A DNA stretch of 64,000 nucleotides. It comes from Hemiscyllium ocellatum. Lineage: Eukaryota. Location: NCBI RefSeq assembly GCF_020745735.1, contig NC_083409.1:11897052-11961051 (forward strand), in the 5' to 3' direction. The notes below the pieces were generated by a model, which searched no databases, was not told where the DNA came from, and worked only from the letters and a program-made list of their open reading frames with translations. The position numbers and the translations under genes are program-made. Within the stretch, counting starts at the first letter, position 1. Each line of letters opens with the position of its first letter. Below are positions 1,256 to 61,472 of the stretch, in pieces.

Positions 1256-1544
1256 CACCTGAAAATTCACCTGAACAGACTCTCACAACTCTGGCCCCTC
1301 CCTGCCTGTTACACTGCTACTACCCCAGTCTATATTCAAAAATTAAAGAACCATTTATAATGACTCTATCATGTTTGCAGATATCTGTAAATTCCTTGCA
1401 TTTGTATTCCTCTGCATCCTTCCCATTGGGTGGTGACTTGTTGACTGTTCTGAGGATTCTGTGGTCCTTGGTGTTCCTCTCTGTTATTCCCTCCTGGCTC
1501 CCACAGCCCTGCCAAGTTAGTTTAAACCCTCGCCAACTGCACTA

Positions 1545-2400
1545 GTAAATCACCCCAAAGGAACTCAGTCCCAGCTCGGTTCAGGAACAACGCTGTCTGG
1601 TCTGTCCAGGTCCCATCTCCCCCAGACCCAGTCTCAATGTCCCAAGAATCTAAAGTCCTCCAACTTGGATCGTCTTTCCAGCTTCACATTCACCTGTGTT
1701 ATCCTCCTGTTCCTATTCTCACTTGGGTGGGGCACTGGGAGAAATCCGGAGATTCTAACTTTTGAGATCCCAGTGCTAATTCCCTCCAGAGCCCCCTAAA
1801 TTCTGACTGCAGGACCACATCCCTTTCCTCCCTCTGTCACTGGGACCGATGTGGACCACGACTGCTGCCTGTTCCCCCTCTCCCCTCAGGGTGCTCTGCA
1901 GCCGCTCAGAGACATCCTTGACCCTGGCACCAGGGAGACAACACACCATCCTGGATTCCCATCTGCAACTGCAGAAACACCTATCGATTGCCCTCACTCT
2001 CGAATCTCCTCTCGCTCTCCCTCTTCCTTGTACCCCCTGTACAGCTGAGCCCCCCGTGGTGCCATGGGCTTGGCTCTGGCTGCACTCCCCAGATGAACCA
2101 TCATTCTCATCAGGATTCTGAACTGAATCCTGGTTGGAGAGTGCGATGCACTCAGGGGATTCCTCTACTAGCTGCCTGGTCCTTTTAGACTGTCTGCTGC
2201 TCCCCCATTCCCTCTCACCCTGCATTCGCTGAAGCTGCAGAGTGACCACATCTAGAAACGTGCTCTCCACAGAGCTCTCAGCCTCACGGACGCTCCGAAC
2301 TGACACCAGCTGCTGCTCAAGCTCCGAAACCCGGAGTTCCAACTGCTGTCACTGACCACACTTTCTGTTCTCATGGTATTCCAGGAGCTAGGAAGCATTC
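1545..2400 (-). mobile_element. CR1 LINE 5' fragment with ORF1 coiled-coil and esterase (SGNH-like) remnant
   Basis: ORF 1776-2342: ELRVSELEQQL...RGDSRVRAIDR...VCCLPGARVKDVSERLQSTLRGEGEQAAVVVHIGPSD, typical of vertebrate CR1 ORF1. Confidence 0.8.
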
Positions 2401-2539
2401 TGAAGTTCCCACCTAAATGCACACTCTCTTCACCCTTTGGTCATCTCTTGGCAAAGTTCTGATGACAAACAGCTCCAGCAGGGCTCACAGTCCAGTGGGT
2501 TCAGTGTTCCAGGGTTTTGGGGAAACTCTCCAGAAGACT

Positions 2540-5500
2540 TTAAGAAATAGGAGCAGAAATCAGCCATTCAGCCCGTTGAATCTGCTCCGACAATTGATCT
2601 TGGCAGATATGCTTCTCACCCCCATTCTCTGCTTGATCCACAGGAACGTTCGATCCCCTTAACTATCACAAACTATCTACCTCTGTCTTAAATACACTCA
2701 GTGACTTGGCCTCCACTGCCCTCTGTAGCAATACATTCCACAGATTCACCACCCTCTGGCTGAAGAAATTCCTCCTCATCTCAGCTCGAAAGGGCCGGCC
2801 CTTCATACTGAGGCTGTGCCTTGGTTACCGACTCTCTCCTGTTTTTGGAAACATCTTTTTCACATCCACTCTATCCAGGTTGATCAGTATTCAGTAAATT
2901 TCAATAAGATCCCTCCTCATCTTTCTAAAGTCCATTGAGTACAGACCCAGAGTCCTCAAGCACATCTGATACGATAAGTCCTTCATCACCAAGATCATTG
3001 TTGTAAACCCCTCCAATGCCAGCCCATGGTTTCTTAGAATATGGGTCCGAAATCTGCTCACAATATTCCAAATGCAGTCTGACCAGAGCCTTACACAGCC
3101 TCAGCAGTACATCTCTGCTCTTGTATTCTGGCCCTATTGAAATGAATGCTATCATTTCATTTGCCTTCCCAAGCACAAACTGGACCTGCCTGTTAACCTG
3201 AAGGGAAACCTGAATGAGGTTCGTGCTTTAGATTTCCAAAAGATTTTCTTATTTAGAAAATAGTCTTTGCATCTCTTCTTCCTCCCAAAGTGCACACCCT
3301 CACACTGTCACACATTGTATTCTATCTGCCACTTCTTTGCCCACTCTCCGAGCCTATCCAGGAGCTTTTACATTCTTCCCACTTCCTCAACACTACCTGT
3401 CCCTCCACCTATCTCATGTCATCTGCAAACTTAGCAACAATGTCTTCCAGATTGTTAATGTATAATGTGAATAGTTAAGGTCCCAACATTGACCCCTACA
3501 TGACTCTACCAGTCACCAACGGCCATTTTTCCTCACTCTCTGCTTTATGCCAACCTGCCAGTCCTTAGTCCATGCCAGTGCCTCGGCCCTCACACTGAAT
3601 GCTCTTATCTAATGTCAAAGGCCTTCTAGAAATCCAAATAGATTACTTCCTTTGACTCTCCTTTGTCTGACTGGCTCATTGCCTCCTCAAAGAATTCTAA
3701 CAGATTTGCCAGGCATGACCTCCCCTTGATGAAGCCGTGTTGACTCAGCCCTAGTTTACAATTGCACCTCCAAGTCCTCTGCAATTTCATCCTTAAATTG
3801 AAGTCTAAAACCTTACCAACAACTGAGTCCAGGCTAACTGGCCTATAATTTCCCATCTTCTCCCTCCTCCCTCCCTTCTTAAACAGGGCTGTTATGTGAG
3901 CCACTTTCCAGTCCCTTGCCCCCATCAGATCCCTGCCCACCACACTGTCATACCCTGACTCCATCGATTCCTGAAAGATCATCTCCAATACCTCCATAAT
4001 TTACTCAGTGATCTCCTTCAGAACACACTCATGTAGTTCATCTAGTCTGGGTGAGTTATCCACATTCAACCTTTCAGCTTCGATTCAATTCCTCTGCTAT
4101 TTCTTCACTTCCTATAATACTTTCTCCAGCCTCATTTTCCAATGTCTATTTTTGCCTTCCTCTTCCTTTTTATACATCTGATAAAACTCGTGCAATCTTC
4201 TTTTGTATTACCGGCTAACTTACCCCCACATTTCCCCTTCTCCACCTTTAATGCTTTTTTATTTATCCTCTCCAGGTTTTTAAAGGCTTCCTAACCCTCT
4301 GGCTTCCCACTTTTCTCTACCACATTGTGCATTTTTTTTCTTTTGCTTTTATGCTGTCCGTGACTTCCCTCACCAGCCATGGTTGCCTTGTCCTCCCCTT
4401 AGTATGTTTCTTCTTTTTCGGATGAATTCCTGCTCTGCTTCCTGAATTATGCCCAGAAACCCTGCTGTTTGCTGCCCCACCATCTTACCTGCTTGGCTCC
4501 CCTTCCAACCAACTCTGGTCAACTCCTTCCTCATGTCTTTGTTGTTCCCTTTACTCAACTGAAATACAGATCCATCTGATTGCAGCTTCTCCCTCTCAAA
4601 CTACAGGGGGAATTCTATCATATTATGATCATTTTTCCAGAAGGATACTTTCACCTTCAGCTCATTAATCAAGTTTGCCTCATTCCACATCACTGAATCC
4701 AGAACTGCCTGTTCCATAATGGCTCAACCGCAAGCTGCTCCAAAAACGATCTTGTAGACATCCATGAAATCCTTTTCTTGAGACGCGCTACCCAGTCCAC
4801 CTATCCATTGAGGTCTGCCCTGACATTTTGTATACGGCTTTTCTGTCTCCTGATTGATTTCCTTCTCCACACCCTGATTACTGCTTGGAGATCTGGACAT
4901 AACTTGCATCATATTCTTTATTTCTTGCGGTTCCTCAACTCTACCCACACACATTCTACACCTTTTGACTCTATCTCACTTCTTGCTTTGATTTAATTTA
5001 ATATCGTACTAACAAGGCAACTCTTTCCCCTCTGTCCATCTGCCTGTTCTTTTGATGGGACATATATCCTTGGATATTTAGTTCCCAGCCCGGATCCCCT
5101 TACAGCCATGTCTCTGTGATACCCACAACATCGTACCTGCCAGTTTCAATCTGCACTACCAGCTCATTGCGTATACTGTGTGCTTTTAAGTCCAACACCT
5201 TCAGTCCTGCATTGACTGCCCTCCTTCTCATCATTATCCTCTTATCTGCTGTGCTTGATGCTCGACTCTTGTTCCTTTCTGTACTCTCTCTCCTGGTATG
5301 CCTTCTAGAAACCGAATAGCCTCTCTTGAGCCCTCCTCCACTTTAACTAGTTTAAATTCCTTGGAAACTCAATTTACCTCGATTTATGGCATCACTTTGT
5401 CTGCCTTACTCGGAATGCTTCGTGCATTTAGATACAAACCCTTTAAGTTTGTTCTATTGTTCGTTTTCCATGCACTTTCATGGTTCCTTCGATGTTCAAA

Positions 5501-5625
5501 AATTCCATCCCTTCCTTTTATTTTCTGGTAACAATCAATCCCATCACTAACCAGCAATCCTACCTTCTCCTTTACCTTCCATTTTCTCATTTTCCATCCA
5601 ACGGAACCAAATTCCTTTCTCTTTG
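2540..5625 (-). mobile_element. Long decayed CR1 LINE (endonuclease to RT to 3' tail), frameshifted
   Basis: APE start LKGLYLNARS (5384-5590); RT motifs HITALFKKGGR...GNYRPVSL, QHGFIKGRSCLANLLEFFEE, VIYLDF (3626-3997); C-terminal LRLCKALVRLHLEY (2925-3176). Confidence 0.85.
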
Positions 5626-5824
5626 GGTTGAGTTCAGGACAATATTTATCCTTGGACCAACATCATGAAAAATGCTCTTTGATCTCATTGCTTCTAGTGG
5701 GATCTTGCTGTGTAGAAATTGGCTGTCCCTTTCCTGACATTGCAACAGTGACTGGTTTTAAAACAAAATGTAAATGTCTTTGGGAGAGCCTGAGGTGTTA
5801 GGGGCTCGATTGAAATACAATTAC

Positions 5825-6490
5825 AGTTATGGAGATGTACAGCAGAGAAACTGACCCTTCAGTCCAAGTCATCCATCCTGACCAGATACCCTAAATTAAT
5901 CTAGTCCCATTTGCCAGTATGAGGCCCATGTCGCTCTCAACCCTTCCTATACATATACCCATCCAGATGGCTTTTTAAATATTGTAATCATACCAGCCTC
6001 CACCACTCCCTCTGGCAGCCCATTCCAAAAATGTACGACCCTCTGCATGAAAACGTTGCACCTTAGGTCCTTTTTAAATCTTTCCCCTGTCACCTTCAAC
6101 CTATGCCCTCTAGTTCTGGACTCCCCCACTCTGAAGAAAAGATCTACTCTATTCACCGTATCTATACCCCTCATGATTTTATAAACCACTGTGTGGTCAC
6201 CCCTCAGCCTCCAACAATCCAGGGAAAATAGTCTCAGTCTATTCAGCTTCCTCCGATAGCTCAAACTCTCCAACCTTGGCAACACACTTATAAAACTTTT
6301 CTGAAGCATTTTAAGGTTCACAATATTGTTCCTACAGCAGGGAGACCAGAATTACACACCGTATTCCAAAAGTGACCAATGTCTGGCACAACCACAACAG
6401 CTCCCAACTCCAATACTCAATGCGCTGCCCAATAAAGGAAACCATACCAAGTTACTTCGTCACTCCCCTACCTACCTGCAACTCCACTTT
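5825..6490 (-). mobile_element. HER1/CR1 LINE 3' fragment
   Basis: ORF 5947-6321: LPRLESLSYRRKLNRLRLFSLDCWRLRGD...RTRGHRLKVTGERF. Confidence 0.85.
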
Positions 6491-6969
6491 CACGGAACTT
6501 TTTTTTTGGTTGAACTGGGAGTCTTTCAGATGTGAAAGGTGCCATTCCATGGCACTGTTGGATGAAGAGCAGGCAGTTCCTTCTGGTGTACCTGGTCACT
6601 ATTTATCCCCCAATAAAAAATCACTAAAAATCTATTTCTCTGCTAATTATCATACTGTGTTTGGGATCTCACTGCACAAAGTCTGCTGGAAAGAGCCATT
6701 GGGACATCCTGAGCTGGGGACAGGTGCTACACAAATGCAGGTCTTTCTTTAAGGTTAGAGTCTCTTGATCCTGAACCTCACCCATTGTCTGCGCACTCTC
6801 ACCTTCCAGGAGGCATGGGGTCATTAGGAGCAGTGACCCTGCCTGACCCCAGGTCACTGAGACTCTTTGCAGCTTCACCCTTGATCTCAGCCCAGTGGTG
6901 TGCAGCAAGGTTTGAAATGTATTCAAGAGCATTCTACACAGACACCCCAATGTGACTCCTTCCCGAAAT

Positions 6970-7560
6970 GTTTGGATCCAAGTCTGCTCCAATGTTCTCG
7001 GATAAAGTTCTCCTCATCTGTGGGTAATCCGAGGTTTGTTAAAGAGGGATCGAGCTCCATCCCACTCTCCAGCTCTTGCTCCATAGCTCTGGATGTTTCG
7101 CTGTTCCAAGTGAATATCCAAGTGTTTTTTCAATGTGATGAGGGTTTCTGCCTCTCCCAACCTTTCAGACAGTGAGTCCCAGATCCCATCAGCCTCTGGG
7201 TGAAAACAATTACTCCTCAATTCACCTCGAACCCTGTCCCCAATTCATTTCAATCTCTCCCCATGGTTATTGCCCTCTCTGCTGATGGAAATCAGTCCTT
7301 CCTACCAATTCTATCTTGGCCCTCATCAGTTTACACACCTTGATCAAATCTCCCCTCAGCCTTCTCTGTTCCAAAGAAAACAGTCCCAGCCAAACCAATC
7401 ATTCCTCAAAACTAAAACTCCCCATTCCTGACAAAATCCTCCACTGTCCCCATCACTAGGGGGATCATATCCTTCCTGTAATGTGGTGACCAGAACTGTA
7501 CCCTGTTCTCTCACTGTGCTCTAACTGGGGTTTGATAAAGTTCCAGAATAAACAAATTTC
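6970..7560 (-). mobile_element. CR1 LINE 3' fragment
   Basis: ORF 7014-7220 (IWDSLSERLGEAETLITLKKHLDIHL) matches the CR1 ORF2 end seen in other copies. Confidence 0.7.
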
Positions 7561-7584
7561 TTGCTTTCACTCTCAACCAAAAAT

Positions 7585-7940
7585 GAGATAAGGGAGGTGA
7601 TGGCCTAATAGTATTATTGCTGACCTGTTAATCCAGAGATCCAGATTAATGTTCTAGGGACCAGGGCAGAATCCTGCCACAGCAGATGGTGGAATTTGAA
7701 TTCAATTTAAAAAATCTGGAATTAAGAGTCTGATGATGACCATGAAACAATTGTTGATTGTCAGGAAAAAAAGCCATCTGATTCCCTAATGTCCTTTAGG
7801 GAAGGAAACTGCCATCCTTACCATGTGACACCAGACCCACAGCAATGTGGGTGACTCTAAAATGCCCTCTGGGCGATTAGGGATGGGCAATAAATGCTGC
7901 CGATCCAGCAATGCCCTCATTCCATCAAGGGAAAAAGAAA
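7585..7940 (+). mobile_element. tRNA-derived SINE, second family (tail gggcaattagggatgggcaataaatgctg)
   Basis: The head gggaggtgatggcctaatagtatt, the body and the tail recur inverted at 59025-59343. The tail also appears at about 9047, 17750 and 25240. Confidence 0.7.
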
Positions 7941-8084
7941 AACTGTTTATCCCATGTGTCTTCTGAACCACCTCACTGACCTGCATTCATTAATCACCAT
8001 GGCCACATCTTCCACCTCCACACACATCTGACTTCCAGCCTCAAGCTGACGACAGACATTCCTTCATTATCTGAGAAACAGACA

Positions 8085-9010
8085 GAAACATAAAACACAG
8101 GAGCAGCAGTAGGCCATTCGGCCCCTCAAGCCTGCTCCACCATTCAATATGATCATGGCCGATCATCCAACACTGTCCCCTGTTCCTGCTTGCTCCCCAC
8201 ATTCTTTGAACTCATTAATCTTAAGAACTGTATCTAATTCCTTCTTGAACACATACCGCATCTAATTCTCTCATGCTGGTAAATTGATGAGAAGTATTGA
8301 GTTGTTTTTTGACACAATGATCCGTTGGGCCTTTTGGGTCTCTCTGACTCTGACTCTATTATTATACGTTATGAATAACTGGGTACCAAGGACTGATCCC
8401 TGTGGTACCCCAACTGGGAAATATCTGCCATTCAGAAAAAGACTCGCTCTTCCTGTCCTGTCTGCCAACCAGTTCTCAATCCATGTCAGTACATGATCCC
8501 AAATCCTCTTGTTTGTTGGGATTTCTTTGATTCAGTTGGACACAGTTAATCCTGTCTTTGCCTTCCTCAGGTCCTGTTCAATGTCACCCCTGCATTTTCG
8601 ATCCTCCTCTGGGCTTTCTGCAGATAACTCCAGATAACCAACATCACCTTCCCTGTTGGTCTTCCCTACTCTGGCTGCCTTTTGACATCCCAGGCTGAGA
8701 GTCTAGATTTGGGAGTCCCACCCTTACTCATTGTGGGAACAGATTCTGAACAATCTCTGTCTTTTCTTTTGAGGGATCCCACTGCCCTGACATTGATTTC
8801 ACATGATGGCGTTGGTTCCAGTCCACTTTTACTAAATTATCGCACAGTTTAGTAAAATAGTTCATTCCCAAGTGAAAACGTTAACACTTGCTGCATGGTT
8901 CTCCATTTCCATCTCTACTCTCAATCTCACTGAGTTCTGGTCACTGTCACTAAACTGCTCCCCCATTGAGAGCCCTTCCAGCTGCCCACATTCATTCCCT
9001 AAACAAGAGT
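8085..9010 (-). mobile_element. CR1 LINE tail plus RT fragments
   Basis: CR1-type tail at about 8090-8230; ORF 8271-8468 contains GVPQGSVLGTQLFITY (RT motif). Confidence 0.7.
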
Positions 9011-9245
9011 CCAAACCTGTTCCTTGTCTTTCCCCATCACCTTCTCGGGGCAATTAGGGATGAGAAATAAATGCTGGCCCTGCTCGTGACACTCACTCCC
9101 AAGAAGCAATTTAAACAATACCTGTTTTTTTTGTCGGGTTTGGTAGGTATTGGATACAAATGTTCAAACATTTTACCAGTGAATGTTCTGAGAGTTGAAG
9201 TTTCTTCAAATGGCAGGGATTAAAATTGTTTCTCTTGTCTTTCTG

Positions 9246-9574
9246 GCCGTGAGAACTCTCAGCCCAAGCTGACCCTGCTGCCCCCCTCCCTGGAGCAGGT
9301 CAATGCCAAGGGCACTGCCACCCTGGTGTGCCTTGCCAATCACTTCTATCCCGATGAGCTGGAGGTGCAGTGGAAGAAGGACGGTGCAGTCATTTCGGAC
9401 GGGGTTCAGACCAGCAACTACCTGCGAGCTTCGGACAGCACCTACAGTGTCAGCAGCCTGCTGACCCTCTCTGGGTCTGACTGGGAGTCCAACGCTCGCT
9501 TCTCCTGTGCCCTCACCCACGTGACCCTCCCCTCTCCCCTCAGCAAGAGCATCAGGAGATCAGAATGTGTGTAG
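9246..9574 (+). CDS. IGKC: Immunoglobulin kappa (shark NS4/type III) light-chain constant exon; open frame, non-canonical acceptor, possibly non-functional
   Basis: RENSQPKLTLLPPSLEQVNAKGTATLVCLANHFYPDELEVQWKKDGAVISDGVQTSNYLRASDSTYSVSSLLTLSGSDWESNARFSCALTHVTLPSPLSKSIRRSECV* shows C1-set Cys/Trp/Cys and a terminal interchain Cys. It closely resembles recalled nurse shark NS4 C regions. Confidence 0.93.
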
Positions 9575-10091
9575 AGTGTGTGAGACAGTCCACAGAGGAG
9601 ACACAACTTTAAATAGAACAGGGCTGAGCTGGCAGGACAAAGGTCATTGTCAGCACTAAATGTCAACGCTCCTCCTTCTCAGGACTGGTCTAGGGGACAC
9701 TTTTGAGGTTCAGGAGTTAAGGCAGTTCATTGGGACAGCGTAGAGAGAGTTTTATCCTATGTAAAACCTCATGCTGTCCTTGTCCTGGGAGTGTTTGACG
9801 GGTCAGGGTTGACTTGTGATGCTAAGTAAAATCTCTTGAAGATGCTGAAAAGTGCCAGCTGTACAAAACAATGTGAACCTCAGAAGTCTCTGCTTCAGTA
9901 AAACAGATCTCCTTCCTGCTCAGCCACCAGTTCCAATTTTTGTCACTGTTTAAAGGGACAGGATTCTCATGTTACTGAGAAAACCTCCACAAGTGTTTTC
10001 CTCAAGCACCATTGTGGCTGTGAATTTGAGCAGCTTCCTCTGTCTGGGCTGTTAATTTTAGTGTTTATTCTCCCAAAGCCAATCAAATCAG

Positions 10092-23519: not shown

Positions 23520-24120
23520 CAAGATCCCATTCTGTACAGGAGATGGGAGGTCATGTAGCAGTTGTACAGGCCATTGGTTAGGCCACTGTTGGAATATTGT
23601 GTGCAATTCTCGTCTCTTCCTATCGGAAAGATGTTGTGAAACTTGAAAGGGTTCAGGAAAGATTTACAAAGATGTTGCCAAGGTTGGAGGATTTGAGCTA
23701 CAGGGAGAGGCTGGGCAGGCTGGGGCTGTTTTCCCTGGAGCATTGGAGGCTGAGGGGTGACCTTATAGAGGTTTACAAAATTATGAGGGGTATGGATAGG
23801 ATAAATAGGCAAAGTCTTTTCCCTGGGGTCGTGGAATCCAGAACGAGTGGGCATATGTTTAGGGTGAGAGGGGAAAGATATAAAAGAGACCTAAGGGACA
23901 AATCTTTCACACAGAGGGTGGTATGTGTATGGAATGAGCTGCCAGAGGAAGTAGTGGAGGCTGGTACAATTGCAACATTTAAGAGGCATTTGGATGGGTA
24001 TATGAATAGGAAGGGTTTGGAGGGATATGGGCCGGGTGCTGGCAGGTGGGATCTTTGGGTTTTGGGATATCTGGTTGGACTGAATGGTCTGTTTCCGTGC
24101 TGTACATCTCTATGACTCTA
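23520..24120 (+). mobile_element. HER1/CR1 LINE 3' end, relatively young
   Basis: ORF 23597-24115 is open for 172 aa of the ORF2 C-terminus; tail ctgtacatctctatgactctatga. Confidence 0.9.
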
Positions 24121-27371: not shown

Positions 27372-29607
27372 GCGTTATCGCGAATAATATGAAATTGAGT
27401 AATTTTGGTGTGGGGAGGGGCAGCTGACAGGGATGTTCCCTGTTGCCCCTACTGTTTACCTTGGTACTTGAACCACTGGCAGGGACTGTCTGAAAAGACC
27501 CTGAAATAACGGCACCGAAGGTGGGAGTTGGGGAAACAAAAATCACTCTCTACACGGACAATGTCCTCTTGTTTTTAGCTAACTCTGAAATGTCCATACC
27601 CTGGCTAATAAAAAAAAAAATTATTCGTCAACCTTTCAGGATACAGAATAAATTTTCCAAAATCGGAAGTCCTGCCTGTGGGAGATTGGTGCAGGTACTG
27701 AAACTGGAGGACGGAATGGAGTTTCCTTTTAGATGGTCACAGAAAGGTTTTCCCTATCTGGGAATTTTTATTACCCCTCACTTCCCGCAACTGTATGGAG
27801 CTAACCTTGTGTCGCTGTTTGAGAGGGTAAAGCAGGACTTGCAGCGATGGGAGGGAATACCCAGATCATGGCTCGGCCGTATAGCCTTGATTAAAGTGAA
27901 TGTTGTTCCTTGGTGGTTCTATCCTGTGAGGATGCTCCCTTTGTTATTACCCAACCAGGTGCTGCGGAGGTTTGTGGGATGGCTTGGATCATTTATTTTG
28001 CGCTGTCGGTGCAATTTAATTAAATTTACCAAATTGCAACTTCCGCAGGATATGGAGGGTGGGCGGTGGACCTCCCAGATCTGAAGAGTATCAAAGCAGC
28101 ACCCTGTTGCTATATGTAGGTGAATGGGTGCGTAATGACTCAAAGTCGATGTGGCTTGATGCAGAGGCCTCGCAGGTGAGATGTCCCTTTAGAAACTTAC
28201 TGTTCATGGATAAGATGAGATCGGTAGGTGCGCATTGTGAAAGTCTGATTATCATAAATACAGTAAAGCATGGAGGATAATGCGGCAGGGTGGAGGCTAT
28301 TTGTAGTTCACCCCGTTAGTGGGAGCCCCAGGATTTAGACTGGGATCAAAGGACTCCAGCTTCAGAGCATGGGAGCGTAATCGAATCCCCTGTCTGGGAG
28401 ATTTATTTGACGGAGGGGTCTTGATGTTTTTTCGCCAATTAGGTCAGAAATATGGAATCCCTAATTGGGATCTTTTCCGATATTTCCAGGTTAGGGATTA
28501 CATACAGAAGAAGACTACGTTCTTGACCCAGCCCAACAAGTCGGATATAGAATGAAGAGTGCTCCGATGAGGGGGCACTCTTTCAGTTAGTACCTCATAT
28601 CATCTGCAGAGAGGGAATGCCTTGGGGGAATTGGAGAGAGTCAGGGAGATTTGGAATCAGGAGTTAAGGGAAGAAATCTCATCAGAAATGTAGGAGGATT
28701 AATGAGGGAATGTAAAGAAAATTTCAATCTACAATAAGGCACAAGCAATGCAATTGAAGATCCTCCCCAGGACCCAAATGGAGCCAGAGAGGTTAGCAAA
28801 GTTTAAGAAAGGGTCTTCCCCGAAATGTCCCAAATGTAAAAACAGTATTGACATCCTTACACATTGCTTTTGGTCCTGTTACAAGATCCTTGAATCCTGG
28901 GGGGGCCATAGTGAATGAGCTGGAGACAATCCTGGGAATGGAAGTTTGGGAGGATCTGGTGTCCCTCCTTTTGGGAACGACCGAAACTTCCCTCTTTGGG
29001 TGAGCACGGGAAGAGGTTATTCAACATTCTTACACATTGTGTGAGGAAGGACATCCTAATGAATTGAATATCAGCAAAGCCTCCAGGTCTTTCAGGGTGG
29101 CACAGACTTGTGATGGAGCACGTCCCTCAAGATTACCTGACAGTATGGGGCACCACGGAATGGAGCAATTTTATAAGACATGGCGGCCCTTTCTAATTTA
29201 CATCAACATGGATCTGTCGGCAGTACTGATTAGGGCCTTTATAGAGGCACGAGGGCTGTATGTGGTGGTCCGGGGATGACAGGGATGGGGGGTGGGGGGG
29301 GTGGGTGGGGGGGGTGGGGGGGGGGGGGTGGTCTCATAAATACGGGTATAATCACTGTTGTTCCTGTGGACAGGAGCTTTGATGGAGAGTGCGGCGAGTG
29401 GAGTCATGTAATATAGTACAAGTAGTGCAATTTAATTTTAATGGATTGTACTTAAATTTAGTGTTATTTTATTTAATTTGAGTTTGTGCTGATTTGTTTT
29501 AAGTTAAGCAAAATATGAGACAACTGTATCTTGAACAGTAGCCGGCGGTTTATTCACATTACTGTATTATAATATAATATTTTTTCAATAAATATTTACT
29601 AAAAAAA
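27372..29607 (+). mobile_element. 5'-truncated L1-clade LINE, decayed ORF2 and 3' UTR
   Basis: RT motifs GRG..QGCSLLPLLF, KITLYTDNVLLFL, FPYLGIFI and WLGRIALIKVN; C-terminal CPKC-x7-HCFWSC (28826-28879); G-rich tract 29282-29331; AATAAA 29587; A7 tail. Confidence 0.88.
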
Positions 29608-30470: not shown

Positions 30471-30635
30471 TTAGGATAACATGAGTTTTAACTGTTGCCC
30501 CTGAATCTGATTCAGTACATTTATTGTGTCTTTTATCAGAACTTCAAAAATATAATCTGCCAACTGCATCTTCACACAAAGCTCATCCTCATCATAATTC
30601 ACCCATTGGGCTTCCTCCTCATAAAGCTCTTGAAC
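30471..30635 (-). CDS. CEP350: CEP350-like terminal coding exon
   Basis: VQELYEEEAQWVNYDEDELCVKMQLADYIFEVLIKDTINVLNQIQGQQLKLMLS*; acceptor ttttctggcag; matches the recalled CEP350 C-terminal (DUF4378) end. Confidence 0.92.
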   Translation of the reverse strand, partial: VQELYEEEAQWVNYDEDELCVKMQLADYIFEVLIKDTINVLNQIQGQQLKLMLS

Positions 30636-33287: not shown

Positions 33288-33410
33288 CAAAATATGGTCC
33301 ACCCGATCACGTTGTTTGGTGCCAAATTTCTTCAACTTCTGCCAAGTCGTCTTCTGATGTTGCTCTTCATTCAACCCAAATAACTTCAAAACTTCATTAG
33401 AAATGAAGAT
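33288..33410 (-). CDS. CEP350: CEP350-like exon
   Basis: IFISNEVLKLFGLNEEQHQKTTWQKLKKFGTKQRDRVDHIL; AG/GT, phase 0-0. Confidence 0.9.
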
Positions 33411-34866: not shown

Positions 34867-35119
34867 ACTCAGAGCTATTACATTGTGTCTCCAGTTTGGA
34901 GTAAAATGAGCTTCCTCGAGGATCAAAATAAAATGGGTATCCTCAGTTCCTGACCTTACTTCCATCATAAGGTCAGAAGTGCGGATGGTTGCACAATATT
35001 CAGTACCATTCATAGACTGTTTCAATATCTGAGGAGTTATGTTCAAAGGCAACAAGATCTGGACAATATGTAGGTTTGGACTGGCAAGAGGCAAATAATA
35101 TTCGGACCAAAACTGCCAG

Positions 35120-36150
35120 TCAATGACCATTCCCAGTAGGAGGCCTGTGACCAGTGGTGTGCCACAAGGATCGGTGCTGGGTTCATTGCATTTCGTCAAT
35201 TACATAAATGATTTGGATGTGAACATGGAACATAGTATGGTTAGTAATTTTGCAGATAACACCAAAATTGAAGGTGCAGTGGACAGTGAAGAAGGTTCAG
35301 AATACAACAGGATCTTGTTCAGATGGGCTGAGGAGTGGCAGATGAAGTTTAGTTTACATAAATGTGAGGTGCTGCATTTTGGAAAGGCAAATAAGGGCAG
35401 GACTTATACACTCAATGGTAAAGTCCTGGGGAGTGTTGCTGAGCAAAGAGACCTTGGAGTGCAGGTTCATAGTTCCTTGAAAGTGGAGTCACAAGTAAAC
35501 AGGATAGTGAAGGTGGTGTTTGGTATGTTTGCCTTTATTGGTCAGAGCATTGAGTACAGGAGTTGGGAGGTCATGTTGCAGCTGAATAAGACACTGATCA
35601 GGCCTCTTTTAGAATATTCTGTGCAATTCTGGACTCCCTGCTCTTGGAAGGATGTTGTGAATCTTGAAAGGGTTATGCAAAGATTTACAAGGGTGTTGCC
35701 TGGGTGGGGGGGTTCTGGTATAGGAAGAGAATGAATTGGTTGGGGTTACATTCCCTGGAGCACCAGAGGCTGAGAGGCGGCTGTGAAAAGATTTATAAAA
35801 TTATGAGTGGTATGGACAGGGTAAATAGACAAGTCTTTTCCCTGGTGAAGGCAATTCCAAAAATAGAGGGCAGAGGTGAGAGGGAAACATTTAAAAGGTA
35901 CGTAACAGGTAACTGTTTCATGCAGGGGGTGGTGTGTACATGGAATGGGTTGCCAGAGGAAGTGGAGGCAGCTGGCATAATGGCGATATTTAAAAGGCAT
36001 CTGGTGGTGTATATGAATAGGAAGGGTTAAAGAGGAAATGGACCAAATGCTGGCAAATGGGACTCGATTTTATCTCGGATAACTGGTCTGTATGGACAAG
36101 TTGAACCGAAGGGTCTGTTTCTGAGCTGTCCATCTCTACGACTCTAAGAG
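35120..36150 (+). mobile_element. HER1/CR1 LINE 3' 1 kb
   Basis: ORF 35123-35734 (GVPQGSVLGSLHFVNYINDL...FADNTKI) frameshifts into 35704-36030; HER1 tail. Confidence 0.9.
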
Positions 36151-37201: not shown

Positions 37202-37348
37202 CTTCACTTCATTTAAATTCTGTGGGTTCCTCGCTCGTTTGAAGAACAAAGAGCTAATTCGGCTTGGCTTCATCCACGGGGCTGGGCTGGCACGGAGGTC
37301 GTCAGAAAAGATGTCAGCAAAGATTTCCCTTGTCACATTAAAGATAAG
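37202..37348 (-). CDS. CEP350: CEP350-like exon
   Basis: LIFNVTREIFADIFSDDLRASPAPWMKPSRISSLFFKRARNPQNLNEVK; AG/GT, phase 0-0. Confidence 0.88.
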
Positions 37349-39113: not shown

Positions 39114-39353
39114 CTCACAATAAGCTCTTCTGCTGACACTCTCATCATCCTTCCATTTATAATTCACAAAGTCTGGGGGTATTTGCAAATCCCCCAAATC
39201 ATGGCCAAGTTCCTGCCATTTGTACAGCTCCTCAGCCGCTCCATGAACCAGTGTCACAATCTCGACTGCATCTTCAGCAAAAGCAAAGTTAATTTCCCCT
39301 TGGATTTTTCGGGGCACATCTTTTCGGGACTGGGGCTCCTGCACTGGGCTGCT
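39114..39353 (-). CDS. CEP350: CEP350-like exon (acceptor uncertain: 39353, or up to 39384)
   Basis: SSPVQEPQSRKDV...EIVTLVHGAAEELYKWQELGHDLGDLQIP...ESVSRRAYCE; donor GAG|GTGAGA. Confidence 0.85.
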
Positions 39354-40779
39354 CTGTTGCAAAGTACACATACTGTTGGTCAATCTAGATACTGAAGGTC
39401 AGGAACAAAAATGATGGAATTCATTTCAAAACATTAATGAACAATACATGGTTTTAATAAACTGTGAAATCAAAGCATGAAAACAGGAGACAAACAAACG
39501 ACAACCTTTGTTTTATATCTCAGAATATGTCTGACAAATCAGACACAGGCTGGAATTCATTTCCAATTTATTCTCAGCCATGTAATGAAAGTCAAGGTTT
39601 CCACATGGAGTGAGATCCAGATCATTAAACAGTATATTTTTTAAGACTGAGTACTCAAACTCAATACAAAATTTACTTGATGGAGTGAAAACAAAAGCTT
39701 TCTACTCCTTTTTAAGCTTCTTCTCAAAACTCCTCACAGCTTCCTTAACTTTTCCAAAACACTCATCATTCTTCTTATTTTACAATACTTTGAATTTCAA
39801 CACCACACGCTCTTAGCACATAATCAAATTATTAAATGAACACCGGAAATAAAAGTGCCCCCAGAAGCAAAGCCAGAAACCACGACTTTCTTGAACCACT
39901 CTGGAACTTCCCCAAGTCCTTTTCTATATTTCCACCCTTCTATCTGTTTAAATCCCGTTTGCTATCCCTGCCTTAATTCCTTGCCAATTAATCTCATGTA
40001 TGACACGTTGTCAAATGTTTTTTTAAAAAGTGCATGTACCCACCCATCATACCTCCACATCTGAAAGTTGAGGCTTTTTTAAGCACAGTCATCACTTTTG
40101 AAATCTGCTCGGATGCTTTATTTCACAGTTACCTGTTTTCTTCCTGTTTTATCTTTAAAAACTTGCATTGATAACAAATCTTTCATATGATAAAACAAAC
40201 CAAGTAGCTTCACAGAAATAGAATAAAACATGATACTGAGCCTCACAGAGATCCAAGGGCAGATGTGAAATCTGTCATACAGTTCGAGTGTCTTGTAGGA
40301 GGAAAGTGACACAGACAGAAGTAAAGTTCAGGGAGGGGATTAAAGAGGTCACTGTCTTAGTAACTGAAGGCTTTTCCATGAATGGAGCAATTAAAATTGA
40401 AATTCTCAAAGATTTAATTAAAGGAATACAAATAGCTTGCCTGCAATGTATAATCATATAAATTAATTTAAATGGTGCAAAGACTGGTTCTGGTATTATC
40501 CTTCACCAATCGGCTTTCTGGAATAGAACAAGTAGTATAATACAATCATCAAGTCTGGAAGTAAGACAGACATTGACGAGGTTTCTGCAGTGGAAGAACG
40601 GAGGTGGGACAGAGACAGATAATCAGAGATTCCGTAAAGTGTCGGAGCAGGTCATTTGGGCTTTTAAGTCCACATCAACCCCCGAGGACCAGCCCACCCA
40701 GAGCCCCCTCCCCCACCTGGATTTCCCATTGTTAATCCACCGAGCCCGCACATATTTCCCATGCCTTCACAAAATTCCT

Positions 40780-41010
40780 ATTCTTTCCCACATTACATTT
40801 CTCATTCCCCACAGAATTCCCATTCTCTGCCACTCCCGTTTCAAATTCCCTCTCAGAATTTCCATTTGATCCCACTCCCATGTTTCCCAACCCCACTCAG
40901 AATTCCCATTCCCCCCACACTTATATTTTCCATTCATTCTCAGAACTCCCATTCCCTCAGATCTCCCACCCCCCTCTCCATATTGTTTCCCATTCTCTCC
41001 ACTTCCTGTT
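40780..41010. repeat. Degenerate (cagaattcccattc)-type low-complexity tract, GGGAAT-rich on minus
   Basis: Repeated ttccc/attccc words with strong strand skew. Confidence 0.7.
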
Positions 41011-41127
41011 TCCCTGGGACTGATTTTGAGCAAAGCCAAGGATTTGCTATTCTCTGCAGCCTTATATGACATTCTTTACTCATTAGAAACAGTTTTTGTA
41101 AAAAAGACAATGCAAAACATCTTTTAC

Positions 41128-41330
41128 CATTTTACTGTGTGTTGCAACAAAATCCTGGGAATAAACACCATCCGTGAAAATAGGATGGTCAGGACTGGTG
41201 GTCAGCCGAAGGGCTGCTGATGGTGATTCCAGTGACTGAGCAGGTGAAATTCTAACTTCCTCAGGAACTGAACTGTCCCTGTGGGGCTGGGAGCAAGGCG
41301 GCACAGGACATTCTTCCTCACTGCCTGTGT
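41128..41330 (-). CDS. CEP350: CEP350-like exon (donor position approximate)
   Basis: (D)TGSEEECPVPPCSQPHRDSSVPEEV...SPDHPIFTDGVYSQDF; acceptor ttttctgtag; donor ATG|GTAAAA. Confidence 0.8.
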
Positions 41331-42182: not shown

Positions 42183-42376
42183 CGTTCAATTCGGGAATCT
42201 TCTTGCTTGCCTCTCTCTTTATCATGTTTGTTTTGAGCTGCTGGTCCCAAGCAGCCTGAGCCTGTTCTTCCATTTGCTGGATCGCAGCTTCCTCGGCATC
42301 GAGCCGCCGCTTCCACTCCAGCAGCTCCTCCGCACGCCGTCGCCGATGGAGTTTCTGCTCCCGTTTAGTGAGAAAC
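42183..42376 (-). CDS. CEP350: CEP350-like exon (coiled coil)
   Basis: FLTKREQKLHRRRRAEELLEWKRRLDAEEAAIQQMEEQAQAAWD; phase 2-1. Confidence 0.92.
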
Positions 42377-44880: not shown

Positions 44881-46189
44881 TTATTATTATCTTGCTTTTC
44901 ATGTTACTAACAGGAAAAATATACAATTACTTCTAAAACATGTTAATTGCTTATCTGGATCACAAAAGAAAAAGCTAATTATTTGTTACAGCCTCTTTAA
45001 AGCTTTACACAAGCATAATTATTACAAAGTTCCAGTGGTAGTTAATTCACCTTGGGAGAATGTGCTAGTTACTATTAGCTTTCCAATATTACAACATTCA
45101 CACAACAAACATAATTTACACTTCTAATTCTGCAATACTTTTCAATTATTTCACTAATTTTGGGTGAAGTTCATTCAGAAATGTAGTACAGCCAACATGT
45201 AGCTGCATGTAGTTGGAGATACTCATGTCTACTGTGACGGTTACATACCAATTAAGTTTTCATATCCATAAGAATACCTCAAATGTTCACCAAAGACACA
45301 TTTGCCCTCTTAAAGAGGCACTGCCTTATGAAAATTCAACCTTGCAACTCAAATTTCAGATTTCTTAAAGTTACATTTATCAAGGTTAGTGGGCTGCTAA
45401 CTCTGCCAGACTATTTGCAAAAGTCCAACTCAACGTTAAATAGGTCAATCTTTATTGTACCCTGTTAGCATGAGCAGCTCAAGATTGTTTGTGTAACTTC
45501 AACTTCTTGCTTTCACAGTAATGCCCCTATAAAACCACGTTCCAGATTAATTGTAAAGTATGCATTATATTGCAAACGAGCAGCTTGCAGCATCTATGTG
45601 AAGCCAAAATTCCTTTCCCCTTGACCCTCCACCGACCCCCCACATCATCCACATGCATGTGATGAAACAGAGCATGCTCGATCAGTGAGAAGCAGAGGTT
45701 GCACAGTACCTGACCAGCTGGTTGTAGATGTACATCTGGAATTTGGGATGTAGGATGGAAAAACAGACACTGAGAGAAGCCCACTGATGAGACGTAAAGC
45801 CAGAGAAGAAGTAGTGACAGGAGAGCGATGTTTACAAAATAAAGGAGCAAAACAAGAAAAACAAAACAGCTGAGTATCTCCCCAAAATTGCTTTATCTTT
45901 AGATACTCAAGAAAACCTCACATTATGAAGGAGAAATTACAAATATTCAATCAAAACATTTGTAACCAACTTCCCTACACCTCTACATCAACACAACCCC
46001 TTCTGCTCGGATTCATTAACTTCAAATGGCAACAGAGCTCATCAAAACCAACCCCAGCTCCATTTCTCTTTCTGACTTAGATAGTGGGAGAATCTCAAGC
46101 ACTGCCTTCCTAACAGTCCAACCACAGATTACAAGCCCATCTGATGTTTGTTTAATGTGGTAATTATTGTTGCCTTCACCATCATTTCA

Positions 46190-48170: not shown

Positions 48171-48358
48171 TTTTCATCCACATGACTGCGCATCTTCTGT
48201 TTTTGCATGATGTTGCTGGTCTCGCTGCCTGAATTCGAAACAGAGGAGGGACTCCACGTCTCCGTATCTGTTTCCAGGAGAGTGGAAGTGGGGCTCACTT
48301 TGGAAACATTCTGCACTTCTGGTTGTCCTGCATTCCGCTGCTCCTGTCGAGTTGGAAC
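48171..48358 (-). CDS. CEP350: CEP350-like exon
   Basis: VPTRQE...ETWSPSSVSNSGSETSNIMQKQKMRSHVDE(K); phase 0-2. Confidence 0.88.
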
Positions 48359-49201: not shown

Positions 49202-49348
49202 CAACTTGCTCTCCCCAACTGATTTGAGCCTCTCCTGAATTTCCCTGGTGGACTGGAGCATGTGTTGAATCTCCTCCTGCTGTTTCAGGATCAGCTGCCT
49301 CTCCCTGTGAGCAGCCTTGTTGGCTTTTTGAAGATGCCTGATTTCAGC
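49202..49348 (-). CDS. CEP350: CEP350-like exon
   Basis: AEIRHLQKANKAAHRERQLILKQQEEIQHMLQSTREIQERLKSVGESKL; phase 0-0. Confidence 0.92.
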
Positions 49349-50420: not shown

Positions 50421-50508
50421 CTGCTCCTGCTGCAGCCTGAGCAGAAGCCCACGCTGCCTCCTACGGATGGATGGCATCTTGTCATCTTCTCCATTGTCTC
50501 GAAGGCAT
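50421..50508 (-). CDS. CEP350: CEP350-like exon (missed by the ORF track)
   Basis: (K)CLRDNGEDDKMPSIRRRQRGLLLRLQQEQ; AG/GT, phase 2-0. Confidence 0.92.
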
Positions 50509-50539: not shown

Positions 50540-52480
50540 CATAGAACGTAGAGCATTACAGCACACTACAGGCACTTTGGCCATCAATGTTGCACTGACC
50601 TGTAGAACCAATTTGAAGCCCATCTATCCTACACTATTCCATTTTCATCCATATGTTTATCCAATGAGCATGTAAATGCCCTTAAAGTTGATGAGTCCAC
50701 TACTGTTGCAGGCAGTGTGTTCCACACCACTACCACTCTGACTAAAGAAATTACCTCTGACATCTGTTCATCCTCCTGCAATTTAAAGCTATGTCCCCTT
50801 GTGCTAGCCATCACCATTTGGGAAAGAAGTCTCTCTCTGTCCACCCTATCTAACCCTCTGATTATCTTATATGTCACAATTAAATCACCTCTCAATCTTC
50901 TTCTCTCTAATGAAAACAGCCGTAAGTCCCTCAGCCTTTCCTCATAAGACCTTCCCTCCATACCAGGTAACATCCTTGTAAATCTCCTCTGAACCCTTTC
51001 TAAAGCTTCCACATCCTTTCTATAATGCAGTGACTAGAACTGTACACAGTACTCCAAGTATGGCCACACCAGAGTTTTGTACAGCTGCAACATGTCCTTG
51101 TGGCTCTGAAACTCAATCCCTCTACCAATAAAAGCTAATACACCGTATGCCTTCGGAACAACCCTATCAAGCTGGGTGGCAACTTTCAAGGACCTATACA
51201 TGGACACCGAGACCTCTCTGCTCATCTACACTACCAAGAATCTTACCATTAGCCCAGTATTCCTTATTCCTGTTGCTCCTTCCAAACTGAATAACCTCAT
51301 ACTTTTCTGCATTAAACTCCATTTGCCACTTCTCAGCCCAGCTCTGCAGCTTATCTATATCCTTCTGTAACCTGCAACACCCTTCAGCACTATACACAAC
51401 TCCACTGACCTTCTTGTCATCTGCAAATTTACTCACCCATCATTCTATGCCCTCATCTGAGTCAAAAATGACAAACAGCAGTGCACCCAAAATAGATCCT
51501 TGCGTTACATCATTCGTTATCGAACTCCAGGATGAACATTTCTCATTAGCTACTACACTCTGTCTTCTTTCAGCGAGCCAATTTCTGATCCAAACAGTTA
51601 AATCACCCTCACTCCCATGCCTCTGTATTTTGTGCAATAACCTACAGTGGCAAAGTTATCAAATGCCTTCCTGAAATCCATATACACCACATCAACTGCT
51701 TTACCCTCATCCATCTGTTTGGTCACTTTCTCAAAAGAACTCAATAGGGTTTGTGAGACACGACCTACCCTTCACAAAAATGTGTTGACTATCCCTAATC
51801 AACATATTCCCTTCTTGATGATTATAAATCCTACCTCTTATAACCTTTTCCAACATCTTACCCAGAACCGAATGAGGCTCACTCGTCTATAATACCAGGG
51901 TTGTTTTTACTCCCCTTCTCAAACAAGGGGACAACATTTGTTATCCTCCAGTCTTCTAGCACTGTTCCTGTAGACAACGACGACATATAGATCAAAGGTC
52001 AAGGTTCTGCAATCTCCTCCCTGGCTTCTCAGAAAATCCTCGGATTAATCCCATCTGGCCCAGGGGACTTATCTATTTTCACACTTTCTCGAATTGCTAA
52101 CACCTCCTCGTCAACCTCAATCCCATCTAGTCTAATAGCCTGCATCGCAGTATTCTCCTTGACAACACTGTCTTTTTCCAGTGTAAAAATGAACAAAAAA
52201 TATTCTTTAAGTGCTTCCCCATCTCCACGGACTCCATGCCCAACATCCCACAACTATCCTTGATTGGCCCTAATCTTTCTCATCATTCTTTTCTTCCTGA
52301 TATACTTATAGAAAACTTGATGGTTTTCCTTGATCCTATCTGCCAGTGATTTCTCATGTCCCTTCTTAGCTCTCTCTTTTGGTCTTTCCTGGCTAATCCA
52401 TAACTCTCAAGCACTCTGACTGAGCTTTACATCTCATCCTAACATAAGTTTTCTTCATCCTCTTGACAAGAGATTCAACT
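50540..52480 (-). mobile_element. CR1 LINE 3' 1.9 kb
   Basis: ORFs 50629-51012, 51194-51436 (SKFADDKKV), 51440-51637 and 52029-52253 (KSPGPDGI). Confidence 0.88.
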
Positions 52481-53988: not shown

Positions 53989-54176
53989 TTTTTCTGGTGT
54001 TCCAACCAGGCCAGCTCTGCTTTGGTCTTTTCCTTCATGGCTTGTTCTCTCAGTTTGAGGAGTGACACCTGGTGCTGTGCACGCATCTCCTCCTCCTCCA
54101 CGTATTGTCGCACCATCTCCATGGTGAATTTACAGAAACTGTCTTGACCTCCAGAGAAGGACATGCTGAAATCATG
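53989..54176 (-). CDS. CEP350: CEP350-like exon
   Basis: HDFSMSFSGGQDSFCKFTMEMVRQYVEEEEMRAQHQVSLLKLREQAMKEKTKAELAWLEHQK; phase 0-2. Confidence 0.95.
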
Positions 54177-56093: not shown

Positions 56094-56278
56094 TTTGACA
56101 GCTATTGAAGCCGATTGATCCTGCAGAATGTCCTCATCGGAATCATCCTGCTGCCTGTGTTTCTTCCCCATGTTAAAGCAGCAATGGCTCTTTGATGGCA
56201 GAAGGGGATAAAAGGATTGCTCTTCAATTTCATCCTCAGTCATTGACTCATCGAACTCAGTGGCAACAGAAGCAGAGT
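56094..56278 (-). CDS. CEP350: CEP350-like exon
   Basis: (D)SASVATEFDESMTEDEIEEQSFYPLLPSKSHCCFNMGKKHRQQDDSDED...K; acceptor ttgtctctccag; donor GTGAGT; phase 1-0. Confidence 0.92.
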
Positions 56279-56737: not shown

Positions 56738-56898
56738 CTTTCTCACCAGGTAATGAAGGCAGACTGTCACTGTGGATCGAGTTGTCAGCTGTTGTTTGAA
56801 CCACCTCTTCAATAGAGCTGTTTCCCTTTGTATGGTGGGAGGTTCTGCTTTTCTCCAAGAATGGTACGGATGGGCTGTCTTGTTTACTGCTGCCACTG
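56738..56898 (-). CDS. CEP350: CEP350-like exon with GC donor (or GT donor 9 nt earlier)
   Basis: (S)SGSSKQDSPSVPF...SSIEEVVQTTADNSIHSDSLPSLPGEK; phase 2-1. Confidence 0.88.
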
Positions 56899-59444: not shown

Positions 59445-59567
59445 CTCCGATCATGATGTTTGAGTCTGGATGACTCAGTCAGACTGTCTAATAAAGTGGA
59501 GTTACGCATTTTAGTGTCTGGCAGTTTCTCTGCAGATCCAGCTGGTGTTGGGCTGCACTCGTTCTTT
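59445..59567 (-). CDS. CEP350: CEP350-like exon
   Basis: KNECSPTPAGSAEK...LLDSLTESSRLKHHDR; acceptor tttcatcgtag; phase 2-2. Confidence 0.75.
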
Positions 59568-61311: not shown

Positions 61312-61472
61312 CTGTCAGGTTCAGTTCTGGTTCGAAGTTGGTTCATGAAGTCTGAATGTTGCTGCCTCTGTTGGTCCAGCAGCACTGTCACTGGCACAGG
61401 AGCTGTTCCATGAGGTGGGTTTGTGGCAGTCAGAGATCCTGCTGCAACCTGCGCACATGCCAACTCAGTCAT
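61312..61472 (-). CDS. CEP350: CEP350-like exon (most 5' exon found in the window; gene continues upstream)
   Basis: MTELACAQVAAG...VLLDQQRQQHSDFMNQLRTRTEPD(R); donor AG|GTAAG; phase 0-2. Confidence 0.85.

Follow-up and report, generated by a model that had tools for sequence, protein, structure and literature searches.

Does the CEP350-related sequence on contig NC_083409.1 of Hemiscyllium ocellatum encode a shortened protein, or is it what remains of a dead duplicate? We examined the sequence within a window, by which we mean the whole stretch of 64,000 nucleotides analysed here (positions 11,897,052 to 11,961,051 of the contig, assembly GCF_020745735.1); all coordinates below are window coordinates. 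The reading that we prefer, with a probability of roughly 0.6, is that the locus is a fast-evolving partial paralogue of CEP350 that lacks the CAP-Gly domain, is protein-coding now or was until recently, and has a putative diverged function.

Fourteen exons of a duplicated CEP350

Fourteen exons on the minus strand, when spliced, give exactly 2,313 nt, or 770 codons and a stop with no internal stop codon. This rebuilt model recovers the 14-exon stop-free frame of a preliminary description of the locus, and re-examination found the exon boundaries and phases at the 41128 donor and the 39353 acceptor to be as described there. The features of the locus are as follows.

61312..61472, minus strand: exon 1 (numbering from the part inside the window), 161 nt; an in-frame ATG abuts the AG acceptor; matches H. 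ocellatum CEP350 (P0027) from residue 1443
59445..59567, minus strand: exon 2, 123 nt; AG/GT splice sites
56738..56898, minus strand: exon 3, 161 nt; GC donor instead of GT
56094..56278, minus strand: exon 4, 185 nt
53989..54176, minus strand: exon 5, 188 nt; coiled-coil region FTMEMVRQY...AWLEHQKK
50421..50508, minus strand: exon 6, short at 88 nt
49202..49348, minus strand: exon 7, 147 nt
48171..48358, minus strand: exon 8, 188 nt
45710..45831, minus strand: relic of an alternative cassette exon, outside the 770-residue frame; 122 nt, against 123 in the orthologue
42183..42376, minus strand: exon 9, 194 nt
41128..41330, minus strand: exon 10, the last before the deletion; phase-0 end; matches P0027 ~1931-1999
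39354..41127, minus strand: intron at the deletion, 1,774 nt; GT...AG splice sites
39114..39353, minus strand: exon 11, the first past the deletion, 240 nt; matches P0027 from about 3024-3026 to 3105
37202..37348, minus strand: exon 12, 147 nt
33288..33410, minus strand: exon 13, 123 nt
30471..30635, minus strand: exon 14, where the coding sequence ends with a TAA stop at 30473-30471
9224..9571, plus strand: immunoglobulin light-chain constant (C1-set) exon; open reading frame; PF07654, E 8.7e-22

Splice dinucleotides are canonical at 25 of 26 positions, the remaining one being the GC donor of exon 3, which has a strong in-frame GT alternative 9 nt upstream (the last exon base would then become 56747). 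At the deletion, exon 10 (203 nt, phase 1 to 0) has the edges tag/AC...ATG/gtaaaa and exon 11 (phase 0 to 0) the edges cag/AGC...GAG/gtgaga. Two phase-0 exon edges have about a 1 in 3 chance of joining in frame, so their junction is not surprising alone; what goes beyond chance is that the frame is intact across all 14 exons despite the level of divergence. Exon 11 is the most diverged from the orthologue, at 69% identity, and exon 14 is 91% identical; exon 1 differs from H. ocellatum CEP350 at just 1 of 53 residues (P ~5e-4 at the mean divergence). In the 2.5 kb before exon 1, where the window ends, we found no CpG island or upstream exon.

The locus is a duplicated paralogue of CEP350, as had been proposed. 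Full-length H. ocellatum CEP350 is a separate gene, annotated over 130 kb in GCA_020745735.1, and the copy retains 13 introns at the parental positions. Over 770 residues it shares 82.5% identity with the H. ocellatum CEP350 protein, differing at 135 of them, whereas the Hemiscyllium and Chiloscyllium CEP350 orthologues are 95.8% identical to one another; its branch in the tree (0.21) is ~14 times longer than that of the orthologue (0.015). Compared with H. ocellatum CEP350 (XP_060686055.1 and isoforms; P0204, P0027), the copy preserves the exon-intron layout throughout its 14 exons, and with it the coiled-coil centre and C-terminal segment of the protein. Missing are about 1,023 to 1,026 residues, the CAP-Gly domain among them; the copy also evolves at ~14 times the rate, alters invariant residues and adjoins an immunoglobulin light-chain exon. 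No sequence for the N-terminal 1,442 parental residues was found in the window. A processed (retrotransposed) pseudogene is ruled out by the thirteen introns at parental positions.

In a homologue search over proteins of 303 to 5,684 aa, Hemiscyllium and Chiloscyllium yielded full-length orthologues only, and nothing annotated in either genus resembled the copy; none of the short proteins in that search is close to it (best 70%), and exon 11 had no match in a PDB sequence search. CEP350-like proteins of Pristiophorus japonicus (P0138, 672 aa) and Callorhinchus milii (P0188, 1,636 aa) are likewise derived from CEP350, keep its coiled-coil centre and have no CAP-Gly domain on record. Their identity to the copy is 37 to 39% over mafft-aligned columns and 45 to 47% by local BLAST. 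Because they are no closer to the copy than to any orthologue, we regard them as separate, older derivatives that belong to another family.

Frame preservation and lost constraint

Possible, though in our view rather doubtful, is that the copy is an unprocessed pseudogene: a dead CEP350 fragment carried as a passenger of amplified light-chain clusters, its frame intact by luck or through recent copying from a less decayed relative. CEP350's site-specific constraint is lost in the copy, as is typical of pseudogenes. Among 17 jawed-vertebrate orthologues 365 of the aligned columns are invariant, and the copy has changed 55 of them, a rate of 15.1% against 19.8% at variable columns (Fisher p 0.11). 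The branch ~14 times the length of the parent's, the GC donor, the failure to find an annotated protein or, in the window, a promoter signal, and a related copy in Chiloscyllium punctatum that is plainly dead all point in the same direction.

Against this stands the condition of the reading frame. Neutral simulation to equal amino-acid divergence predicts 6.4 to 9.2 stop codons, and 0 are observed (probability of no stop, 0 to 0.002). The small deletions relative to the parent are all multiples of three (6/6), compared with 3/11 of the gaps in introns (P ~4e-4). The 122 replacements are more conservative than random missense changes, with a mean BLOSUM62 score of +0.07 versus -0.30 to -0.39 (P 0.0005 to 0.0075), and what lesions there are occur where they do no harm. 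Because the stop, indel and replacement tests are largely independent, pure neutral decay along this lineage is very unlikely; disabling lesions have not accumulated at the neutral rate that marks unprocessed pseudogenes. GC-biased substitution was considered as a means of stop avoidance and rejected, with 33 W-to-S and 37 S-to-W changes.

The lesions within the copy are confined to the relic of the skippable cassette exon, where they are harmless, and so provide an internal control. There the acceptor has AA in place of AG, and a single base is missing at 45817/45816. The orthologous cassette peptide, 41 aa long, does not vary among the isoforms of Chiloscyllium, Stegostoma and Scyliorhinus.

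The preliminary description had offered two fates for the duplicate, a CAP-Gly-less centrosomal scaffold or a young pseudogene. Coding potential, the first half of the former, is borne out by the frame statistics; the scaffold label finds no support, 55 of the 365 invariant columns having changed. The young pseudogene does not fit a copy in which 135 of 770 residues differ from the parent and the expected lesions are absent, and which arose near or before the Hemiscyllium/Chiloscyllium split, though the dating signals conflict. Reading frame, splice sites and replacement type all appear to have undergone continued filtering, from which we infer that the copy is probably translated now, or was until recently, and that selection may have acted on the window copy itself. 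Its intactness could also stem in part from recent copying, or from gene conversion by an intact relative.

A dead relative in Chiloscyllium and the age of the copy

The C. punctatum copy (L001, contig BEZZ01031324.1) is collinear with window positions 39344-34696, and its introns are 86.6% identical. It has a CEP350 part in common with the window copy and a similar divergence from the parent. L001 is clearly dead: exon 11, inside which it starts at the contig end, carries a 1-nt deletion and a stop, and exon 12 is without both splice sites. The window copy, by contrast, has none of these lesions. Over exons 11-12 the two copies are 24.1% diverged in exons versus 13.4% in the flanking introns, a ratio of ~1.8 (p 6e-7), and transversions alone show 12.2% versus 7.0%. 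CpG decay was rejected as the cause of this exon excess, for with CpG contexts removed the values are 21.9% and 12.4%.

Exons that have diverged ~1.8 times faster than introns, in a copy that has kept its frame, allow a more ambitious reading, which we put forward tentatively and consider unlikely. The shortened CEP350 copies would then be a translated, fast-evolving family under diversifying selection, arisen in hemiscylliid sharks with antibody light-chain clusters, and their products could function at the centrosome, as decoys or adaptors, in cells expressing the neighbouring antibody genes. Such products would keep the coiled coil and a C-terminus of the FOP-binding type, with both microtubule-binding parts gone. 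The C-terminal domain of CEP350 binds FOP (PMC5493781), and human CAP350 binds microtubules through its N-terminal domain (PMC4357431). Exons 11-14 align to P0027 3024-3248, a parental segment that scores as DUF4378 (PF14309, E 1.3e-7); single exons of the window are too short for domain scoring and gave 0 families each.

In the whole-length tree the copy is sister to the H. ocellatum orthologue (99/96), and the two have 7 derived states in common. However, 5 of 29 sites derived in the hemiscylliid stem are ancestral in the copy. The sister placement conflicts with these ancestral sites and with the collinear Chiloscyllium copy.

The missing block and the antibody neighbour

Between exons 10 and 11, about 1,023 to 1,026 parental residues are absent by alignment to P0027, rather than the ~850 aa given, for the human protein, in the preliminary description. 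The absent block contains the CAP-Gly domain (CAP_GLY, PF01302; P0027 2576-2640, E 7.6e-23) and the motif QSDIEIRIRALK at P0027 residue 2055. That no such block is found in this stretch, as had been claimed, was upheld: in tblastn with the corresponding sequences of three sharks, the lowest E values were 0.14 across the window and 1.5 within the intron. Intron 39354-41127 has a 42-nt tandem repeat at 40804-40911, and a comparison with the remaining window found no repeats common to both.

The partial paralogue that we favour would belong to a family of partial CEP350 duplicates in hemiscylliid sharks, whose members were copied at the level of genomic DNA, introns included. A genomic deletion removed the exons for the missing residues, CAP-Gly among them, and joined the intron downstream of one exon with a phase-0 end to the intron upstream of another with a phase-0 start. 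Since phase-0 edges were joined in this way, splicing from 41128 to 39353 would stay in frame. What is left in the window is 770 codons: P0027 residues 1443-1999, which form the central coiled-coil region, and a C-terminal stretch of 224 residues that corresponds to the DUF4378-bearing part of the parent.

It is improbable that the gap reflects a fusion and not a deletion, exons 1-10 (the 5' piece) and exons 11-14 (the 3' piece) being independent partial duplicates juxtaposed by rearrangement within the antibody locus. Divergence from the parent does differ slightly between the pieces (15.8% in exons 1-10 versus 21.9% in exons 11-14, p 0.047), and L001 is a 3' piece that exists in Chiloscyllium; but L001, since it begins at a contig end in exon 11, is uninformative on an upstream piece, the pieces agree in orientation and order and are compatible in phase, and a single deletion is the simpler event. 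Still less probable, to the point where we give it very little weight, is an assembly artefact in which CAP-Gly exons at the locus were collapsed or dropped: loci of repeated families are hard to assemble, but no N occurs in the window, the intron consists of ordinary unique sequence and has canonical splice ends, and the flanking exons are far too diverged for a misassembled parent gene.

Full-length CEP350 with a CAP-Gly domain is present in every elasmobranch (sharks, rays) checked, H. ocellatum and Chiloscyllium among them, which settles the existence of a full-length orthologue that the preliminary description had wished to see established. PF01302 is carried by 16 of the 16 orthologues listed (chondrichthyan and others), including those of H. 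ocellatum, C. punctatum and C. plagiosum, and it is not the case that shark orthologues generally lack these exons. The window copy lacks the CAP-Gly domain that the CEP350 orthologue group carries in its C-terminal third, and it shows neither one-to-one orthology nor an orthologue-like rate. That the copy represents the true orthologue in a shark lineage whose CEP350 lost the CAP-Gly region, a reading with the similarity itself and nothing else in its favour, is refuted by the universal PF01302 among these orthologues, the full-length gene in H. ocellatum, the gap between 82.5% identity to the nearest orthologue and 95.8% between those of the two genera, and the branch length.

The immunoglobulin light-chain exon at 9224-9571 lies tail to tail with the CEP350 copy, 21 kb from the copy's 3' end. 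It has TG where an acceptor AG would be expected, and simple motif and RSS scans of window positions 1-9,700 found no V or J segments. This neighbour was absent from the preliminary account of the locus. Most likely, the copy would have spread as a passenger of antibody-gene amplification; as a passenger should, it shares its stretch of DNA with a light-chain gene segment.

Human SRGAP2C, ARHGAP11B and NOTCH2NL are truncated duplicate genes inside segmental duplications, and partial duplicates surviving in amplified regions are known to give rise to new proteins. The shark copy resembles these genes in being a DNA-level duplicate of part of a large gene, with introns and an open frame, and by analogy it could code for a shortened protein capable of binding its parent's partners. 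It differs from them in combining an internal deletion with 5' truncation and in its co-location with an antibody gene. To our knowledge, cases outside primates that combine a kept frame, the loss of an internal domain and a clear dead relative are uncommon. Should the copy not be expressed, the matter becomes one of annotation, because such copies can be mistaken for CEP350 and inflate shark gene counts, and the kept frame would need another cause, such as gene conversion within the family. If it is expressed, sharks would carry lineage-specific, CAP-Gly-less derivatives of CEP350 that are physically tied to antibody light-chain loci, and the locus would offer a tractable case of gene birth via hitch-hiking.

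Exon structure and the missing block

When 1.8 billion proteins were searched without a profile, the 80-residue peptide of exon 11 matched residues 3025-3104 of P0002, the 3,248-residue CEP350 of the ray Narcine bancroftii, which carries its CAP_GLY domain at 2585-2649. With tblastn, two separate parts of P0027, the full-length CEP350 of Hemiscyllium ocellatum, were placed in the window: residues 1443-1999 on ten exons from 61472 to 41128, and residues 3026-3248 on four exons from 39353 to 30474. The intervening block was undetectable by tblastn (the best matches reach E 0.14 across the window and E 1.5 within the intron, and are scattered over both strands). Both the motif QSDIEIRIRALK (residue 2055 of P0027) and the CAP_GLY domain (2576-2640) map within this block, in agreement with the preliminary description, which had reported both absent; its figure of about 850 residues for the loss was too low, the copy lacking about 1,023 to 1,026.

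Elements of the gene model
41330-41128, minus: exon 10, 203 nt, preceded by tag and followed by gtaaaa, ending in phase 0
39353-39114, minus: exon 11, 240 nt (80 codons), preceded by cag and followed by gtgaga, starting in phase 0
50508-50421, minus: small exon, 88 nt, needed for the 14-exon frame
45831-45710, minus: cassette exon relic, a fifteenth element, corresponding to an alternative exon of some orthologue isoforms

The neighbourhood and phases of exons 10 and 11 are as first described, and the 14 exons reproduce exactly the stop-free frame then proposed: 2,313 nt, comprising 770 codons free of internal stops and a terminal TAA. The 1,774 nt between these two exons contain a 42-nt tandem repeat (40804-40911) and no sequence found repeated in the rest of the window, which itself contains no N. 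Splice dinucleotides are canonical at 25 of 26 positions; the exception is the GC donor of exon 3 (56738-56737, minus), which has a strong in-frame GT donor (consensus GTGAGA) 9 nt upstream. The cassette relic is broken, with AA at its acceptor and one base deleted; skipping it preserves the frame, and isoform X4 of H. ocellatum also skips it. The 41-residue cassette peptide (HCSPVHYFF...NQLVR) does not differ among isoforms of Chiloscyllium, Stegostoma and Scyliorhinus and is thus unusually well conserved for so odd and hydrophobic a sequence.

It had been considered that shark orthologues might generally lack the missing exons. Full-length CEP350 bearing PF01302 is on record for H. ocellatum itself, Chiloscyllium punctatum and C. 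plagiosum, Stegostoma, Rhincodon, Scyliorhinus, Mustelus, Cetorhinus, Heterodontus, Heptranchias and Pristiophorus, as well as for four batoids and Callorhinchus; sharks therefore generally keep the CAP-Gly block. Two proteins annotated 'CEP350-like', P0138 of Pristiophorus japonicus (672 aa) and P0188 of Callorhinchus milii (1,636 aa), resemble the copy in having no CAP-Gly match, but at 37 to 41% identity to both the copy and the orthologues over mafft-aligned columns (42 to 49% by local BLAST) they appear from sequence to be separate, older CEP350 derivatives.

Paralogy and age

The copy is a paralogue of CEP350 and not its orthologue, as the preliminary description had proposed. Over 770 aligned residues it shares 82.5% identity with H. 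ocellatum CEP350 and 81.2% with that of C. punctatum, whereas these orthologues share 95.8%. In the maximum-likelihood tree it falls within Hemiscylliidae, where the H. ocellatum orthologue is its sister (99/96), on an end branch of 0.21 versus 0.015 for the orthologue. The true H. ocellatum gene is annotated separately and spans 130 kb of a 116-Mb sequence in GCA_020745735.1.

Evidence for the age of the duplication is mixed. The tree, together with seven derived states common to the copy and H. ocellatum (none is common to the copy and C. punctatum), points to an origin after the split between Hemiscyllium and Chiloscyllium; by these shared states the genome belongs to the Hemiscyllium lineage. 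At 5 of 29 family-stem derived sites, however, the copy is ancestral, and L001, a CEP350 3' copy in C. punctatum (contig BEZZ01031324.1), is collinear with window positions 39344-34696, its introns being 86.6% identical. Exon 1 (61312-61472, minus) has a single difference from the H. ocellatum orthologue in 53 residues (P ~5e-4), against an average of 17.5% over the rest of the copy, a pattern suggestive of either local constraint or a recent gene conversion by the parent. Our tentative reading is that the copy arose close to the split or earlier and afterwards exchanged some sequence with its parent.

Constraint on the reading frame

Constraint tests conflict: CEP350-type conservation has been lost, yet neutral decay looks very unlikely. 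In 17 orthologues, spanning coelacanth to sharks, 365 alignment columns are invariant; the copy is changed at 55 of them (15.1%), compared with 80 of 405 variable columns (19.8%; p 0.11). The copy has ceased to evolve like CEP350, and these proportions leave the suggested role as a centrosomal scaffold unsupported as stated.

The suggestion of a young pseudogene fares no better as worded, given the origin we favour and the lack of lesions at a neutral rate. Neutral substitution simulated to 110-135 amino acid differences produced 6.4 to 9.2 stops, and only 0 to 0.2% of runs had none. All six small deletions relative to the parent (4, 4, 1, 1, 2 and 1 codons) preserve the frame, with no frameshifts; because only 3 of 11 flanking-intron gaps are divisible by three, six of six has a probability of ~4e-4. 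The 122 polarised replacements average +0.07 on BLOSUM62, comparable to differences among true orthologues (-0.23 to -0.01), whereas random missense changes average -0.30 to -0.39 (P 0.0005 to 0.0075). The copy's lesions fall where they are harmless, in the cassette exon, while two exons of L001 together show a frameshift, a stop and the loss of two splice sites. Since the stop, indel and BLOSUM62 tests agree and lesions lie only elsewhere, filtering for an open, spliceable frame has acted along the lineage of the copy. A weak-to-strong mutation bias sparing stops was also considered; the inferred mutation spectrum contains none.

Compared with L001, identity is 75.9% in exons 11-12 (377 nt) and 86.6% in the introns (1,774 nt; p 5.6e-7), so that exons are ~1.8 times as diverged (24.1% vs 13.4%). 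CpG decay is rejected as the cause, as the excess survives removal of CpG contexts and is present in transversions alone. It extends to every codon position, with exon differences of 0.23, 0.20 and 0.30. By the Nei-Gojobori method dN is 0.23 and dS 0.58, compared with 0.148 for the intron distance. Because exon 11 is the copy's most diverged exon and the comparison covers two exons only, the excess may be local rate variation; it would also be expected from positive selection or from exon-limited exchange with more distant family members. The excess is seen even though L001 is a dead pseudogene.

Genomic setting and predicted product

Neighbouring features
9224-9571, plus: immunoglobulin light-chain constant exon (C1-set, E 8.7e-22), tail to tail with the copy
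50632-52253, minus: LINE reverse-transcriptase relic, inside or around the copy
35099-35731, plus: LINE reverse-transcriptase relic (RVT_1, E 5.8e-10)
23582-24112 and 27494-28081, plus: LINE reverse-transcriptase relics, inside or around the copy

LINE relics occupy much of the remaining window. The immunoglobulin constant exon has TG at its expected splice acceptor, and simple scans of the 9 kb upstream found no V or J segment; it therefore looks like an orphan or a decayed cluster. Positions 1-8000, upstream of this exon, have a strong negative GC skew on the plus strand (about -0.3). Our literature search found no paper tying shark light-chain loci to CEP350. The copy was most likely carried along as a passenger when the antibody locus was amplified.

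The 2.5 kb upstream of exon 1 contain neither a CpG island nor a further exon; the genuine 5' end therefore lies beyond the window, if it exists at all. The predicted product of 770 residues retains the coiled-coil centre and the last 224 residues of CEP350, and the parental region corresponding to the latter scores as DUF4378. FOP binds the C-terminal domain of CEP350 (PMC5493781) and microtubules its N-terminal domain (PMC4357431). Judged by the missing block and the window's content against these published roles, the product would be without the CAP-Gly domain and, as far as the window shows, without the N-terminal microtubule-binding part. Our best reading is that the copy is a fast-evolving partial CEP350 paralogue whose frame is under selection now or was until recently.
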